DNA of 45,636 bases from Octopus sinensis (taxonomy: Eukaryota). A model generated the notes under the pieces. The model worked only from the letters and a program-made list of their open reading frames with translations. It was not told the origin of the DNA and ran no database searches. Of this stretch, positions 1 to 16,269 are shown piece by piece; the first letter of the stretch is position 1; each line of letters begins with the position of its first letter. The position numbers were made by a program, and so were the translations under genes. The stretch spans positions 1 through 45,636 of the forward strand of contig NW_021835106.1 in assembly GCF_006345805.1 (NCBI RefSeq), written 5' to 3'.

Positions 1-500
1 GGGGACAAAGACCCGTCGGTAAATGATGTTTCATCGGATAATGAAGAGCCAGAAGAGAGTGGAGCAGAATCAGATGACGAAGGATTGTTAGAGGGTGGAG
101 AGGAATCAGAAGAGGACGGAGTCCCGGTGGATGACGCGTCGTCAGAGGACGGTGAAGACGAGTTAGTGGATGGAGAGAAGTCAGTGGATGAAGACGAGTC
201 AGAGGGTGAAGACTCAAATAATGGAGGACTATGGGTGGACGACGACGAGTCAGTGGTGGGAGACGAGTCAGTGGATGAAGGCGAGTCAGCGGATGAAGAC
301 TCAAACGATGGAGGACTATCAGTGGGTGACGACGAGTCAGTGGACGAAGAGGAGTCAGCGGATGAAGCAGATTCCGAGAGTGAAGATGAAGCAGCGACTG
401 AGAGTCTCTTACTGAATAATGGAACGTCGGTTTCTAGCGAAACGCTTGATTCTGGAAACTCAACAACCGAAGGAGAAAGCCTTGCTGTGTCCAGTTCTCG
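1..500 (+). CDS. Coding exon (5'-partial) of an EGF-repeat gene: Asp/Glu/Ser-rich low-complexity region
   Basis: Frame 1 is open from base 1 (GDKDPSVNDVSSDNEEPEES...GESLAVSSSR), with about 66 D/E in 167 codons and internal VDEDES/VGDES repeats. It ends at a canonical donor TCTCG|GTAAGT (501), phase 2, which joins the 4636 exon in frame. Confidence 0.85.
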
Positions 501-962
501 GTAAGTTAATGCTTCATTCCACCCGGTTTCACATCGCCACTTTCCTCTTCGGGGCTTCTTGTGGTTTTTTACTTTTTTCTTATTAAATAATCGGACCGTG
601 TCTATCTTCGTGTGAATGTTTTAAGTGTTTTAGTGAAAAGAGAGGAGTTGAGCCCGTAGCTCTGTTCAGGGCCCCTGGCATATGTGGGAAGCAATGGGTG
701 AGGTGGGGCTTGGCCCTAACAATTGCAACAGAAGGGACTCAGTGTACCTGAATTACACCAGCATTTGTAGTTTTTATGTCGATCTGTTTTTACTTAGCCC
801 AGTGCATCTCTGTCAGTAGGTAGAAATGAAAACCCATAGCCTGTATATCATAACTGTATTTTTTCAAACAGTCCTCCATAGATCCCTCTTTTTCTTTAAT
901 ATATGATGAGATATTCTTTTCTACTTGAGGCACAAGGCCCGAAATTTGGAGGGAGGGGGCCA

Positions 963-1307
963 GTCGATTATATCGACCCTAGTGCGTAACTGGTACATAT
1001 TTAATCGACTCCGAAAGGAAGAAAGGCAAAGTCGACCTCGGCGTAAATTGAACTCAGAACCTAACGGCAGACGAAATACCTATTTCTTTACTACTCACAA
1101 GGAGCTAAACACAGAGAGGACAAACAAGAACAGACAAAGGGATTAAGTCGATTTTATCGACCCCAGTGTGTAACTGGCACTTAATTTATTGACCGCGAAA
1201 GGATGAAAGGCAAAGTCGACCTCGGCGGAATTTGAACTCTGAACGTAACGGCAGACGAAATACCGCTAAGCATCTCGCCCGGCGTGCTAACGTTTCTGCC
1301 AGCTCGC
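963..1307 (-). mobile_element. tRNA-derived SINE (family 1), with internal tandem duplication
   Basis: Reverse complement of the GCGAGCTGGCAGAAACGTTAGCACGCCGGG...GAGTTCAAATTCCGCCGAGGTCGAC head (A-box/B-box-like). Further copies at about 2645-2815(+), 5085-5265, 5590-5800, 7780-7965, 9515-9630, 11965-12150, 13700-13820 and 15230-15565 (all -), and 29377-29450(+). Confidence 0.85.
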
Positions 1308-1724
1308 TTCTTTAATACGATGAGATATTGACATACGACTGGGCAGACGATCTCTCCTAAAAGTACTTGACTTGTTTTCCTGATCCTTGCATCAATATAG
1401 GGTCCGCTGTATTTAATCCTGTTTGCTGATTCTATTGGGATGTTCCACCAACTTTCTGGATATATTCTGGTTCTGTTGCGCCAATCTTCAACAAGCCAGA
1501 TTCCTGTAACGGAGCGACGAACCTGAAGGGGCCCAAATAAAACTGTTTCAAATAATAATGATAATTAGTGTGATTTCAAATTTCTGCCACAAGAGCAGCT
1601 TGGGGTGAGGTGAGGGCGAGTCGATTACATAGAGCCTAGTCTGTTATTTTCTCGACGTTGAAAGGAAGAAAGCAAAGTGCACTTTGGGGAATTCGAAATC
1701 AGAACGGAGCGACGGGTCAAATAT

Positions 1725-2010
1725 AGCTTAAACAACCCTTATTCAACATCCTTAAACAACCCTTATTCAGTGAACTTTGGAGTGGGATGGGCTTCTCGAC
1801 CAGAAGAAAATTCTAACTGGTCCCCACCTGCAAGATCATGCGCTATTTATCTTGATATGAGATCACCATGTCCCGCACATATGGTTGTGATGCATGTGCC
1901 TGGGGTACCCTTATCAGACGGGTAGTCATGATGGGTATACTGAGCTTCGTATATTTTACCACGGTGTCACTTTGATGGCATGCACTGCTCTCTCACTCAA
2001 TAATAATAAT
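1725..2010 (+). mobile_element. Interspersed retroposon 3' end with (AAT)n tail (family 2)
   Basis: The same ~300-500-bp sequence (…ccccacctgcaaggtcatg…gtgtcactttgatggcatgcactgctctctcactc(AAT)n) recurs at 5331-5571, 6295-6856, 10500-10886 and 14696-15205 with variable 5' truncation, as expected for LINE/SINE 3' ends. Confidence 0.8.
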
Positions 2011-2011
2011 T

Positions 2012-3875
2012 TCTTTTTTCGCCACTAAGGGTTTACACAAAAGGGGCTGCTCATTGAAACCCCACAAAAACAACGATCACTCTGACATCTAGGGTGTATG
2101 CTCTCTTCACTTCATGTGCCCTTAATGTACAGGCGCGTACTTCTAGAAAGACCATTCACTAGGGCCATTCGAGCTACATTCACCCATCTTTTAACAAAAT
2201 TGCTAGGTGGCAGCACTTCCCTCTTTACCCTCACTTTGAGATTCTGGGTAAAGAGGAAAGTGTCTGTCTTCAGCCCTTTCAGCAAGGTCCACCAGGCAAC
2301 CTCTTTCGCTATGGCCACTAGACTAAGCAAAGATGCCTGTCCCTCCCGGTTGGAAGAAAGCAGCGGGCTGATCCTTACCAATAACTTAGCTGAAATCCGA
2401 ATCCGTCCTCCAAGTGGGAGCAGTTCTTCGATGATAAGCGCCGACCCCTTTGCTAACAGCCTGCTCGAAAGTTTGATGTCTGTGTTCAGCAGCGTTATGA
2501 ACCTAGTTTTCTATTTCATCTCCCTTGTTTGGGTCCATTTTTAGCAGTGCCACCGCTCCTAGACTCACAGAATTGGGAAATAGCCTGTTCTAGTACCAGT
2601 TACGGTAGCAGTTCTGGCAGATCTGCTAGAAGGCTGTCAAACAAAGGCGGATCGTTAGCACGACGGGAGAAATGCTTAGCGGTATTTCGACTGCCGTTAC
2701 GTTGTGAGTTCAAATTCCGCCGAGGTCGACTTTGCCTTTCATCTTTTCGGGATCGATTAAATAAGTACCAGTAACACACTGGGATCGATATAATCGAATT
2801 AATCCGTTTGTCCATCCTACGTTCTGGATATCTTTACGTTCCACATATTTGCCAAAGGGATCTTGAAATACCTCACACATCTTCTCCGGTTGGAGTTCCT
2901 TGCGCCCATTTTGGTCCACCAAAGACTGAATAGTGACTTTGCTTTGACGTTGTGCGTCTGTCATTCGACCCCATTATGGGGCTTTCCTTCCCTCTTCTCT
3001 TACAGAGTGCACCTTAGATCTGACAAGGCAACCTTCGTGTTTATCTTTGAGCAAATGGTCCAGAGCTAATCTTGCAGCAAGCAGGTCAGCTGCAATGTTC
3101 TTCCAAAGCGCCATTTCGAAGTTACTGACTAAATTCCCTTCTGTTTTATCCATCTCTACCACTAATGCTTTAATAAACCTACCTAACGCCAACCATCATT
3201 TGTTGTTGACGATTAGCCCCATCAACGCCATCTTAGTTAATTGTCTAATTCGGTCTCTGTTGGATTGGCACTTTGGGAGCAACGCTTTCAGCCTCCAGTA
3301 ACCGGATCCCTGCCTTCTAAGCCTATCTAGGTTAACAACTTCTACTAACGTTAATCTACTTGCCTATAGAACCCCGTTCCTCATCAAAATACGACCTGGT
3401 TGACCCCATACAGGCTTTTACCATCCGCTTTCTATTCGCTAGACCCACACAGTCCAATTGTATCTCTAAGGCACCGTACCAGTTGCCCACTAACTCTAAA
3501 TTTCGAGGCATTCCTAGGAATACCTCTCGATGTCTGAAGATATACGGCTTCCCTGCTTCTATCGGAGTATAAACAGGTACCTGTCTGTAAGTACCCCCGT
3601 CACTACAATTCGCATCCAGGACCATCATCTCTCCTTCTGGATCCAGGAAGATAGTCCTTATGTTGAGATCCATGCCCCTACGGATCAACGCCGCCGTTCA
3701 ACCTCCGATTCCCGGTTGACATGGAGATAAATACTTCTCGTATCCCGCGAAAGATGGCAAGAAAGCATGTCGGTCGGAAAGTCTAGTTTCACTGATGGCG
3801 ATTACATCGACACTTAGTGATCTAATGTCGTTGAGTAGTGGCCTTGTTTCCAAGGCGATCGCAAGTCAGTTCTTT
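2012..3875 (-). mobile_element. Degenerate, internally deleted L1/Tx1-clade LINE ORF2 (APE endonuclease, start of RT, C-terminus), interrupted by a SINE
   Basis: Minus-strand motifs: DVIAISETRL and DPEGEMMVLD..VYTP..VGNW (APE endonuclease); GCLVRS linker; RFITLLNTDIKL (RT start, ~2440-2510); AIAKEVAWWT...KRW C-terminus. Multiple stops and frameshifts. Confidence 0.85.
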
Positions 3876-15121: not shown

Positions 15122-15203
<82 letters not shown>

Positions 15204-15568
15204 GTAATAAGCCATTCTACTATGGGAACAAGGCTTGAACTTTGTGGAGGAGGTGGTGAAGTGGATTACATAGACCCCAGTCTAGAACTAGTTCTTAATT
15301 CATCGATCCCGAAGGACGAAAGGCAAAGTTGATCTCGGCGGGATTTTAACCCAAAACATTAATACGGTCGACTTGCCTCCAAGCATTTTGTCCGGCGTGT
15401 TAACGATTCGTCCGTCCTTGACTGGTACTTATTTTATCGACCGCGGAGGGCTGAAAGGAAAAGTCGACCTCGGTGGAATTTGAAATCAGTACGTTAAATG
15501 AACGGGCAAAATGTCGCCAAGCATTTTACCCGGCGTGTTAATGACTCTGCCATCTCACCGCCTTCACC

Positions 15569-15608
<40 letters not shown>

Positions 15609-15679
15609 TGGTTCTAAGTTTTGACGTTTCAGTATATCTACTAAAATTTTCTTCTCAAGTAATATGCAGGAGAGATATC

Positions 15680-15760
15680 ATCACCACTGCTTTGGCAAGA
15701 TATGTATGGATCCTGAAAGAACCCACCGCACAATATTACATTAAGTGGAGTCTGTCAGAG
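15680..15760 (+). mobile_element. Short Penelope-like element remnant (segment following the GIY-YIG core)
   Basis: Translates to ITTALARYVWILKEPTAQYYIKWSL, resembling the T-x-L-S-K-Y-I/V-W-x-L-K…Y-x-I-K-W-S-I motif of PLE C-termini. Short, so uncertain. Confidence 0.5.
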
Positions 15761-16012
15761 TAGAACAGACTTAGCTGAACATCAGAAGGTTCTGAAAATT
15801 CTGTTTACCAGGGAAAGGAAACAGTAACATATCCCGCCACCCCTGAACTATTCAAATGAGCGTTTCTTATCTTGACCTCCTGAACGCAAGATTATAATAA
15901 ACCCTTTTGTGGGATGCTCCATTAGTATAGCGTTCGCTTCTTACATTTTTGTATATTGTTACATATTTTTTAAATTTTTGCTTATATTTATTTATTTGTG
16001 TCTTATTTTCAG

Positions 16013-16269
16013 GTATCGGCTAATTTTAACGAATTTTAAAATATTCCCAGCAGGAAATATCTGTCGGTCACATTCCTAGCAAGACATCTCCCGCCTGATT
16101 TATCTCCGTATGACCTACATCGCCAGTTATTACCAGGTTATCTTCGATGAAGTTTACAGAGAAGACTATCCCCTCATCCAAATATCTCAATTATATCTTA
16201 GTACTATATTAACGTAATTTAGCTTTCTCTGATCATTATATTAATTGAATATATTAATTAATAAATAAA
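16013..16269 (+). CDS. Possible terminal exon of the EGF gene: codes xGT ATC GGC TAA (R/G-I-G-stop, 16013-16023) followed by 3' UTR
   Basis: Strong pyrimidine tract and acceptor tatttatttgtgtcttattttcAG| (16012), compatible with phase 1. Overlapping AATAAA signals at 16260-16269. No transcript evidence. Confidence 0.45.

Follow-up and report, generated by a model that had tools for sequence, protein, structure and literature searches.

The stretch of DNA studied here (the window) comprises the 45,636 nucleotides of contig NW_021835106.1 of Octopus sinensis (assembly GCF_006345805.1). We are highly confident that the segment from position 1 to about 16.28 kb of its + strand is most of a real multi-exon protein-coding octopus gene (Table 1). 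It encodes a long acidic block, a module with eight cysteines (8-Cys module) and an array of Arg-rich EGF domains, and it ends with a terminal mini-exon. A first-pass annotation had proposed for the same segment a hidden gene encoding a charge-segregated protein.

The window begins inside exon 1, whose donor (CG/GTAAGT; here and below a slash marks the boundary) is in phase 2. Positions 1-500 align with residues 84-296 of P0001 (UniParc UPI00069532CB), a truncated ortholog-like model of 379 aa that is the best database relative, so that the start of the window corresponds to residue 84 of P0001. Since P0001 and the paralogs described below all begin with MKNLVLFLFVFVVGLWVTEG in the exon of the acidic block, the signal peptide that the first-pass annotation expected upstream is most probably encoded in exon 1 as well, about 250 nt before the start of the window. 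The acidic block contains the glycosylation sequons NGT and NST, the family-conserved motif GNSTTEGESL, and an 87-nt (29-aa) tandem repeat, present in 2.6 copies at positions 157-386.

The 8-Cys module is encoded by exons 1b and 2. The first-pass annotation had joined position 500 directly to 4636, a junction that is phase-compatible but wrong, since P0001 reads ...AVRRSR-GLCRVRCYKTVTYKKSRRSWCWFLRRCTKY-RTAFRR... and places exon 1b in between. The residues that correspond to exon 1b are contiguous in P0001 and in the relatives P0003 and P0008, and the homologous exon of O. bimaculoides lies at positions 15542-15637 of the locus L001. The acceptor at 4636 is confirmed by P0001 (...KYRTAFRRIRTTC...). 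What had been called an EMI-like linker is the second half of this module, and the "SRR" regarded as a cleavage site falls between two of its cysteines and is not conserved in the relatives, so that cleavage at this point is unlikely.

In the whole window, a three-frame scan for Cys-rich segments detected exactly seven EGF-like exons, all of them + strand. Each one has 120 nt, six cysteines, symmetric phases (1-1) and an AG acceptor behind a polypyrimidine tract, and GTAAGT donors are found in five of the seven. The gene retains all of its 50 cysteines (8 + 7x6), as well as every acceptor and reading frame. The seven stretches are matched by the EGF-family profiles of Pfam (PF00008, PF07645, PF12662, PF12947), with scores of 103.9 bits for cEGF (cut-off 26.6, E-value 3.5e-30), 101.7 for EGF_3 (28.5, 2.3e-29), 98.1 for EGF_CA (27, 3.3e-28) and 66.2 for EGF (21.5, 3e-18). 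The B and C exons show the consensus of calcium-binding EGFs (cbEGF; D/N-x-D/N-E/Q-C and C-x-D/N-x4-F/Y-x-C), as (D)RNEC...CINTPGSYRC in B and as DVNEC in C, whereas the three A exons are of the non-calcium-binding type and lack it. Exon B1 shares 81% nt identity with the exon at 20580-20699 of L001.

The terminal mini-exon at 16013 and its acceptor are identical in sequence to L001 27205-27215, where the annotated coding sequence of P0008 ends. This exon and the AATAAA at 16260 end the gene, and thus the interval delimited by the first-pass annotation finished near 16.27 kb. The exons had been said to be out of frame in the list of open reading frames (ORFs); this holds for the B exons, which are covered solely by out-of-frame ORFs, but the A and C exons are in frame in ORFs with a start codon. 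Long (ATG)n microsatellites (7014-7530 and 11046-11715) occupy the introns immediately ahead of the B exons, and such runs create spurious poly-Met/poly-His ORFs of 230-334 aa that cross the B exons in the wrong frames, on the two strands.

Table 1. Features of the octopus gene in the window, in order of position.
Feature	Position	Strand	Details
Coding exon 1, 3' part; polyanionic Asp/Glu/Ser-rich block	1..500	+	frame 1 open, 167 aa
Exon 1b, N-terminal half of the 8-Cys module (GICRVRCYKTVTYKRARRSWCWFLRRCTKY)	4023..4115	+	93 nt; phase 2-2; acceptor ttttttccag; donor CG/GTAAAT
Exon 2, C-terminal half of the 8-Cys module (TASRRILTTCRRCCRGWTGTPGRCR), CCxGW motif	4636..4712	+	phase 2 to 1; donor G/GTAAGA
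EGF exon A1, non-calcium-binding type	5931..6050	+	net +10; splice sites, Pfam
Two tandem copies of a ~4.19-kb unit	7400..15165	.	~7400-10975 and 11585-15165, ~99% identical
EGF exon B1, cbEGF-like (xRNEC...CINTPGSYRC)	7576..7695	+	net +9; splice sites, Pfam
EGF exon A2	9754..9873	+	net +10; splice sites, charge count
EGF exon C1, cbEGF-like (DVNEC)	10341..10468	+	net +7; in-frame TAA 10466-10468 (...CVRR-stop)
EGF exon B2, copy of B1	11761..11880	+	2 nt differences, both non-synonymous
EGF exon A3, copy of A2	13942..14061	+	1 nt difference
EGF exon C2, copy of C1	14530..14657	+	4 nt differences; in-frame TAA 14655-14657; GTAAGT donor 14681
Terminal exon, coding start GT ATC GGC TAA	16013..16023	+	reads GIG-stop after the phase-1 G
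AATAAA, likely polyadenylation signal	16260..16265	+	first such hexamer past the terminal-exon acceptor

Duplication of an EGF block and its possible products

EGF exons 5-7 are a copy, ~99% identical, of EGF exons 2-4 (B-A-C). Each copy of the duplicated unit contains, in this order, an (ATG)n microsatellite, the B, A and C exons, and a repeat that resembles a short interspersed nuclear element (SINE). The two copies differ in a few substitutions (in the exons, six non-synonymous and one synonymous) and in microsatellite length, and no N gaps occur in the window. The breakpoints fall in repeats (~6.8, 10.9 and 15.1 kb), and the presence of related SINE-like copies flanking the unit, at ~6.6-6.9, 10.6-10.9 and 14.8-15.1 kb, fits an unequal crossing-over. 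A remnant of a C-type exon was looked for between A1 and B1, and none was found. The ancestral gene had four EGFs (A1-B1-A2-C), to which B-A-C was added by a very recent unequal-crossover duplication of 4.19 kb. Three EGF exons are also tandemly duplicated, with a period of ~2.65 kb, at positions 31337-35701 of the O. vulgaris locus L002 (CATOCA020000013.1), where the annotated isoform uses only some of them; this duplication represents the same mode of growth.

The number of EGFs in the product, predicted to be 4, 6 or 7, would be set by splicing. At the end of the C exon, P0008 reads ...GTTG/GTAAGT, without a stop, whereas both copies of the window read ...GTTC GTA GAT AA, so that the good donor has been destroyed and an in-frame TAA has been created two codons past the last Cys-x-Val of the C-type exons (10341 and 14530). 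A strong GTAAGT is located 24 nt past the stop (at 10492 in C1), and only a weak donor, C/GTAGAT, precedes it in C1, at 10461. If C1 is included, translation would stop at 10468, leaving the downstream exons as 3' untranslated region and yielding a protein with four EGFs. If C1 is skipped, six EGFs would be produced, and the A2-B2 junction would restore the canonical DRNEC; at the start of B1 this Asp becomes a Tyr because A1 ends in T. Finally, seven EGFs could be obtained only through the weak donor at 10461. Thus, the seven EGFs counted in the first-pass annotation do exist as exons, but their presence in a single protein depends on this donor. Exon skipping is plausible because all the EGF exons are symmetric and because the O. 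vulgaris protein P0002 ("isoform X3") skips alternate exons of a similarly duplicated three-exon block.

Relatives in Octopus and comparison with known EGF proteins

The window gene belongs to a family that was recovered by protein database searches from only three Octopus species. Its members are annotated as "fibulin-1-like" (P0003, P0194 and P0231, from O. vulgaris and O. sinensis), "wall 2-like" (P0002 and P0205, from O. vulgaris) and "adhesion G protein-coupled receptor E2" (ADGRE2) (P0008, from O. bimaculoides, with 195 aa and ending after two EGFs), and these automatic names are artefacts of EGF similarity, since no member has a fibulin C-terminal module or a seven-transmembrane region. 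The family consists of small proteins, predicted to be secreted. The layout is conserved in P0002, P0003, P0008, P0194 and P0205, and consists of a signal peptide, a variable acidic linker that ends in GNSTxEGESL, an 8-Cys CCxGW...C module, an array of 40-residue EGF/cbEGF domains, each encoded by one exon (phase 1-1), and the terminal mini-exon. The signal peptide, MKNLV(L/V)FLFVFVVG(L/V)W(V/L)TEG, is encoded by the first coding exon and is present in all relatives. The window gene carries, after GNSTxEGESL, the two-exon module pattern of the family, C-x3-C-[YF]-K...W-C...C-[TS]-[KR]-Y...C-x2-CC-[KR]-G-W...C, and the mini-exon GT ATC GGC TAA spliced from a phase-1 EGF exon. Together with the exon structure, these common features identify the Octopus relatives as true homologs. 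They share neither the Arg-rich array nor, with the exception of P0001, the large acidic block of the window protein, and its A-type EGF was not found in the paralogs.

P0001 is the closest relative, 86% identical over 56 residues to the product of exons 4023-4115 and 4636-4712, compared with 58-69% for P0008 and P0003. It consists of the signal peptide MKNLVLFLFVFVVGLWVTEG, an acidic block longer than that of the window, and ...AVRRSR-GLCRVRCYKTVTYKKSRRSWCWFLRRCTKY-RTAFRRIRTTCLRCCRGWIGTPGRC, and it shares with the window both the long acidic block and a Cys module of charge +18; the EGF part is missing from this model. P0001 starts with translated sequence ahead of the Met and ends inside the third intron (after exon 2), and genomic counterparts of both extra stretches exist in L001 and the window. 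The model resembles a transcript whose splicing was incomplete, and it would indirectly indicate that introns 1 and 2 are spliced out in vivo in a related species. Hence, the gene was hidden only in part: there is no database protein with the Arg-rich array, but the family is annotated in three Octopus genomes and a truncated model of the ortholog exists.

When the family alignment was used as a search profile, the only additions were P0194, P0205 and P0231, and in an exhaustive HMMER search with P0008 the best 150 matches were dominated by giant multi-EGF proteins, with no further family members. No characterised member was found in the literature on octopus EGF/EMI, fibulin and arginine-rich proteins. 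The paralog locus L001 of O. bimaculoides, which contains the P0008 gene, aligns collinearly with the window (76-81% nt identity) and has an identical terminal exon, and repeats of the window match O. vulgaris loci at 94-97%. Since the family members share even intron sequence (77-83% identity), the family is young; it is expanding in tandem and was found here only in the genus Octopus. Over the homologous exons, the ratio of non-synonymous to synonymous substitution rates (dN/dS) between the window and P0008 is ~0.8, with cysteines and scaffold residues fixed, indicating that surface residues evolve fast. Two other loci were less informative: L003, 101 kb of O. vulgaris around P0194, has only repeats in common with the window and holds only paralogs, and L004, from O. 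sinensis, has nothing longer than 300 nt in common with it. The model of P0194 ("fibulin-1-like isoform X1"; L003 10001-91202, OX597839.1) extends over 81 kb, has no residues corresponding to exon 1b and contains an unusual insert that is not EGF; neighbouring paralogs seem to have been merged in it.

Concerning the 8-Cys module, of the profiles named in the first-pass annotation EGF and EGF_CA matched, but Pfam EMI (PF07546) gave no match at E<=1 for the window protein, P0002, P0003 or P0008; only the CCxGW motif is shared, and we have rejected membership of the EMI family. In phmmer, CCRGWTGTPGRC was aligned with the C-terminal sub-motif of Notch EGFs. An AlphaFold2 model of P0008 of moderate confidence, built on an alignment of only four sequences, shows the module as a long beta-hairpin with two short strands (predicted local distance difference test, pLDDT, 67-80). 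A Foldseek search of the PDB with this model, in which the two EGFs dominate, returned only EGF-containing chains, and no EMI, among the 50 matches listed. The Nimrod/EMI proteins (NimB, Draper/MEGF10, EMILIN) likewise have a signal peptide and a Cys-rich element ending in CCxG(Y/W) ahead of EGF-type repeats, and in the Nimrod superfamily a CCxGY motif precedes NIM repeats of the type CxPxCxxxCxNGxCxxPxxCxCxxGY (PMC4073527). Unlike these, the window repeats are cbEGF and not NIM: all seven modules depart from the NIM consensus and no Nimrod protein was recovered in the searches, so that Nimrod membership was also discarded in spite of the CCxGW.

The modules share the profiles EGF_CA, cEGF and EGF_3 with those of fibulins, fibrillins, LTBPs and Notch, and among the matches listed their closest solved structures are the EGFs of Notch, NELL, EMR2 and fibrillin. 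However, the arrays of all these proteins are acidic, and the window protein lacks the fibulin C-terminal module, the TB domain, and the GAIN and seven-transmembrane regions. The module PF22914, which is present in the true fibulins among the search matches, is absent from the window protein and from its octopus relatives, and the product ends two residues after the last EGF; an identity as fibulin was therefore rejected. The same applies to adhesion GPCR E2/EMR2, given that the Pfam scan detected neither GAIN nor seven transmembrane helices and that the gene ends at 10468, 14657 or 16023. A venom protein of the cephalotoxin type, which combines LDL-receptor class A, Sushi and TSP-1 domains with EGF (bioRxiv 10.64898/2026.04.09.716377), was discarded too, as only EGF-family profiles match the window protein.

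Charge distribution and its possible meaning

The acidic content noticed in the first-pass annotation was reproduced from frame 1 of positions 1-500: the block has 66 D/E vs 3 K/R in 167 aa and a net charge of about -63, with 21.6% Glu, 18% Asp, 18% Ser and 11% Gly. Since S-x-E motifs of secretory kinases account for just 3 of its 30 Ser, we have not relied on Fam20C-type phosphorylation. Each of the seven EGF modules contains 9-12 K/R and 0-2 D/E, which confirms the net charge of +7 to +10 claimed before, and the 8-Cys module has a net charge of +18. The whole Cys-rich part (22.9% Arg, 14.7% Cys, 12.4% Gly and 6.9% Tyr, plus other aromatics) adds up to +56, +76 or +84 with 4, 6 or 7 EGFs, respectively. 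Calculated isoelectric points (pI) are <=4.05 (acidic block), 10.8 (Cys part) and 5.25 (all of the visible protein). The rough cancellation of both charges that had been proposed is best in the ancestral four-EGF form (-63 vs +56), which combines separate anionic and cationic regions with a near-neutral total, as expected for an acid-masked precursor.

The array is also unlike those of the ordinary fibrillin or Notch type, as already pointed out in the first-pass annotation. The EGF-like domains of 193 homologous EGF proteins recovered in the searches (n=3592), used as a yardstick, have a mean net charge of -5.3 +/- 3.2 and a maximum of +8 that is reached once. The modules of the window are at or above this maximum seven times in a row, which confirms that the pattern is not due to chance.

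The comparison with the paralogs sets this gene apart. The net charges of the N-terminal block and the Cys part are -8 and -3 in P0002, -5 and +15 in P0008, and -9 and +33 in P0003, and the EGFs of the paralogs range from -7 to +8 per module vs +7 to +10 in the window. Two joint changes have occurred in the window paralog: the 29-residue repeats enlarged the linker to about -63, and the Cys module and all the EGFs became polycationic. In P0001 the acidic block reaches -82, and the Cys module keeps its +18 although 8 of its 56 residues are substituted. In the Cys part of the window protein, acidic residues persist only as the Asp/Glu of the cbEGF calcium-site consensus (DVNEC, RNEC). Moreover, Arg exceeds Lys by 50:9, with AGA as 29 of the 49 Arg codons counted, and the exons have a GC content of 49% vs 36-39% in the introns, Arg being enriched relative to the AT-rich background. 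The conservation of charge in P0001, the exclusive persistence of consensus acids and this Arg bias argue for a selection on charge with the fold retained, rather than for decay.

The best overall explanation, whose likelihood in our opinion approaches an even one, is a gene of the Octopus family in which coupled changes in charge have produced a polycationic EGF array masked by acid. As for the mechanism, the mode of action that we favour, although only tentatively, is that the acidic block might be a built-in counter-ion, masking an array that later engages polyanionic targets. The protein would be made as a nearly neutral zwitterionic precursor, in which the acidic block would pair with the EGF array and mask it along the secretory pathway. 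Once outside the cell, the array would turn active and bind polyanions, for instance in membranes, sulfated glycans, nucleic acid or mineral, and unmasking might be due either to proteolysis at the boundary between block and module or to displacement by a stronger polyanion.

A precedent for this logic, shared more generally by anionic pro-regions of cationic toxins and defensins, is proMBP, the precursor of the arginine-rich eosinophil major basic protein (MBP), with published pI values of 3.9 for the acidic part, 10.9 for the cationic part and 6.2 for the whole, whose acidic part was proposed to keep the Arg-rich toxin harmless during transport (PMC2189086). These values resemble those of the window protein, and both proteins would be secreted precursors of near-neutral total charge, acidic and rich in Glu/Asp towards the N-terminus and cationic and rich in Arg towards the C-terminus. 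They are not homologous, and the cleavage of proMBP is established, whereas the boundary in the window protein has no furin motif. The fold is different as well, as MBP is a C-type lectin and not an EGF protein.

Several observations weigh against masking and release. The boundary between block and module in the window (SSSR/GIC) has a single Arg and no furin site, and since it differs in P0001 (RRSR/G), P0003 (KR/T) and P0008 (none), cleavage is not a conserved feature. The paralogs P0194 and P0231 have basic EGFs (+2 to +8 per module) without a large acidic block, so that a moderate charge does not require masking. The duplication has upset the charge balance, leaving a net excess of +13 to +21. 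A dN/dS of ~0.8 is also compatible with relaxed constraint, and no database protein contains the Arg-rich array.

The main rival explanation, which we consider unlikely, is a block polyampholyte, where the oppositely charged halves of different molecules would pair and coacervate into an adhesive, a cement or a mucus or egg-coat matrix. The near equality of the blocks, an abundance of Arg, Gly, Tyr and other aromatics that suits cation-pi cohesion, and the duplication of EGF blocks in the window and in L002, typical of repeat-based structural proteins, are in agreement with it. A precedent exists in Pvfp-5beta, a basic mussel plaque protein with two EGF modules, a positively charged face and mixed Tyr/Lys, whose cation-pi contacts were linked to coacervation; like the window protein, Pvfp-5beta and mfp-2 are secreted molluscan proteins in which basic, aromatic-rich EGF modules are arranged in tandem (PMC9314366). 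However, the basic residue of Pvfp-5beta is Lys, and dihydroxyphenylalanine (DOPA) chemistry is discussed for the mussel proteins (PMC9314366), whereas the basic residue here is Arg and Tyr is modest. The Octopus proteins are short, with 2-7 EGFs, and a 1:1 balance within a molecule favours compact self-neutralisation as much as a network. No specific sequence relationship with the plaque proteins was recovered, and to our knowledge these have neither a polyanionic block nor a CCxGW module. It is improbable that the gene does not work in its present form, either as a rapidly drifting or decaying paralog or because the last three EGF exons are an assembly artefact, such as haplotype copies placed in tandem, in which case no seven-EGF protein would ever be produced. 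The ~99% identity of the units, the excess of non-synonymous differences between them (6 vs 1), the stop in C1 ahead of three further coding exons, the dN/dS and the lack of a full-length relative in a collection of 5.8 billion proteins would fit such a gene, but the cysteines, acceptors and frames are all intact, the charge is kept between the window and P0001, and the remaining acids are exactly those of the calcium-site consensus. In addition, the copies differ in substitutions and microsatellite length, there are no N gaps, and a similar three-exon duplication is present in L002. This objection concerns mainly exons 5-7 and leaves the four-EGF gene unaffected.

Two further roles deserve mention. 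A secreted recognition or bridging factor similar to Nimrod B would bind microbes or cell debris and pass them on to phagocytes, its extreme charge being an adaptation to anionic surfaces. It would have the expected signal peptide, a CCxGW that immediately precedes the EGF-type repeats and no transmembrane segment, and a fast evolution with tandem expansion suits immune genes. We consider it quite improbable, as the repeats are of the cbEGF type (DxNEC...CxNTxGSYxC), the motif has W and not Y, and no sequence search revealed Nimrod homology. A composition rich in Asp, Glu and Ser is typical of acidic biomineral matrix proteins, and the acidic block (21.6% Glu, 18% Asp, 18% Ser) might bind calcium or calcium carbonate in the statolith or stylet while the basic EGFs, with their calcium sites kept, anchor it to an organic scaffold. 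EGF-like domain proteins are recurrent components of molluscan shell matrices (PMC9290575). But such a mineral- or chitin-associated matrix protein is highly improbable, considering that S-x-E motifs are few, that octopuses have little mineralised tissue, that the acidic block is absent from other family members, and that no homology to known matrix proteins was found.

Returning to an acid-masked EGF array, the fold, the family and the logic of a base masked by acid are each known separately, and what is new, in the collections searched, is their combination, so cationic an EGF array with a matching polyanion fused to it. It is somewhat unlikely, although possible, that this secreted protein is specific to cephalopods and represents the first of its kind, an EGF-fold polycation with a built-in polyanionic partner that arose by a coupled charge escalation of the acidic pro-block and the Arg-rich array. 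The roles that would follow, i.e., a masked effector targeting membranes or polyanions (antimicrobial, venom or gamete-related) or a single-chain complex coacervate, are, taken together, doubtful to a similar degree. Few building blocks of extracellular proteins are as common as EGF modules, which are usually acidic. The array of the window, joined to an acidic block of opposite charge, is a natural experiment on the charge tolerance of the fold, and the protein is a candidate masked polycationic effector or self-coacervating biomaterial. If the coupled-charge reading is true, these modules would have a role not seen in fibrillin- or Notch-type arrays. The analysis also provides a corrected model for an unannotated or mis-annotated octopus gene and defines a family, found here only in Octopus, that automatic pipelines now label as fibulin, adhesion GPCR or "wall 2-like" and whose mode of growth is illustrated by the three-exon block duplications.

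Other features of the window

The window is AT-rich DNA with abundant microsatellites, SINE-like fragments and fragments resembling long interspersed nuclear elements (LINE), and Rfam and tRNA scans of it were empty. The SINE-like repeat, of ~227 bp, has many copies (1081-1307, 7797-7965, 11982-12150, 27867-28093 and others), which are 82-89% identical to L001 1671-1897 and have no tRNA or Rfam match. Within intron 1, the - strand contains several ORFs of 50-110 aa between 2100 and 3850 (e.g., 3698-3853, METRPLLNDIRSLSVDVIAISETRLSDRH...) that look like a remnant of a LINE endonuclease/reverse transcriptase, with no Pfam match.

Downstream of the gene, an ORF on the - strand (28906-29475) matches the 2B domain of Pif1 helicase (E 1.6e-08) and is probably a remnant of a Helitron/Pif1-like transposon. 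Another - strand ORF (37269-37604), with no Pfam match at E<=0.01, finishes with a stretch similar to the C-terminal region of a death domain and could be an exon of a minus-strand gene. A 491-bp satellite occupies positions 24965-26147 (2.4 copies, 99% identity), and the same repeat is found in O. vulgaris at L002 1103-2549 with 94-95% identity. In the window as a whole, an (AT)n run of ~840 bp (33734-34571) and an (AAT)n run (15014-15210) both yield long low-complexity ORFs.

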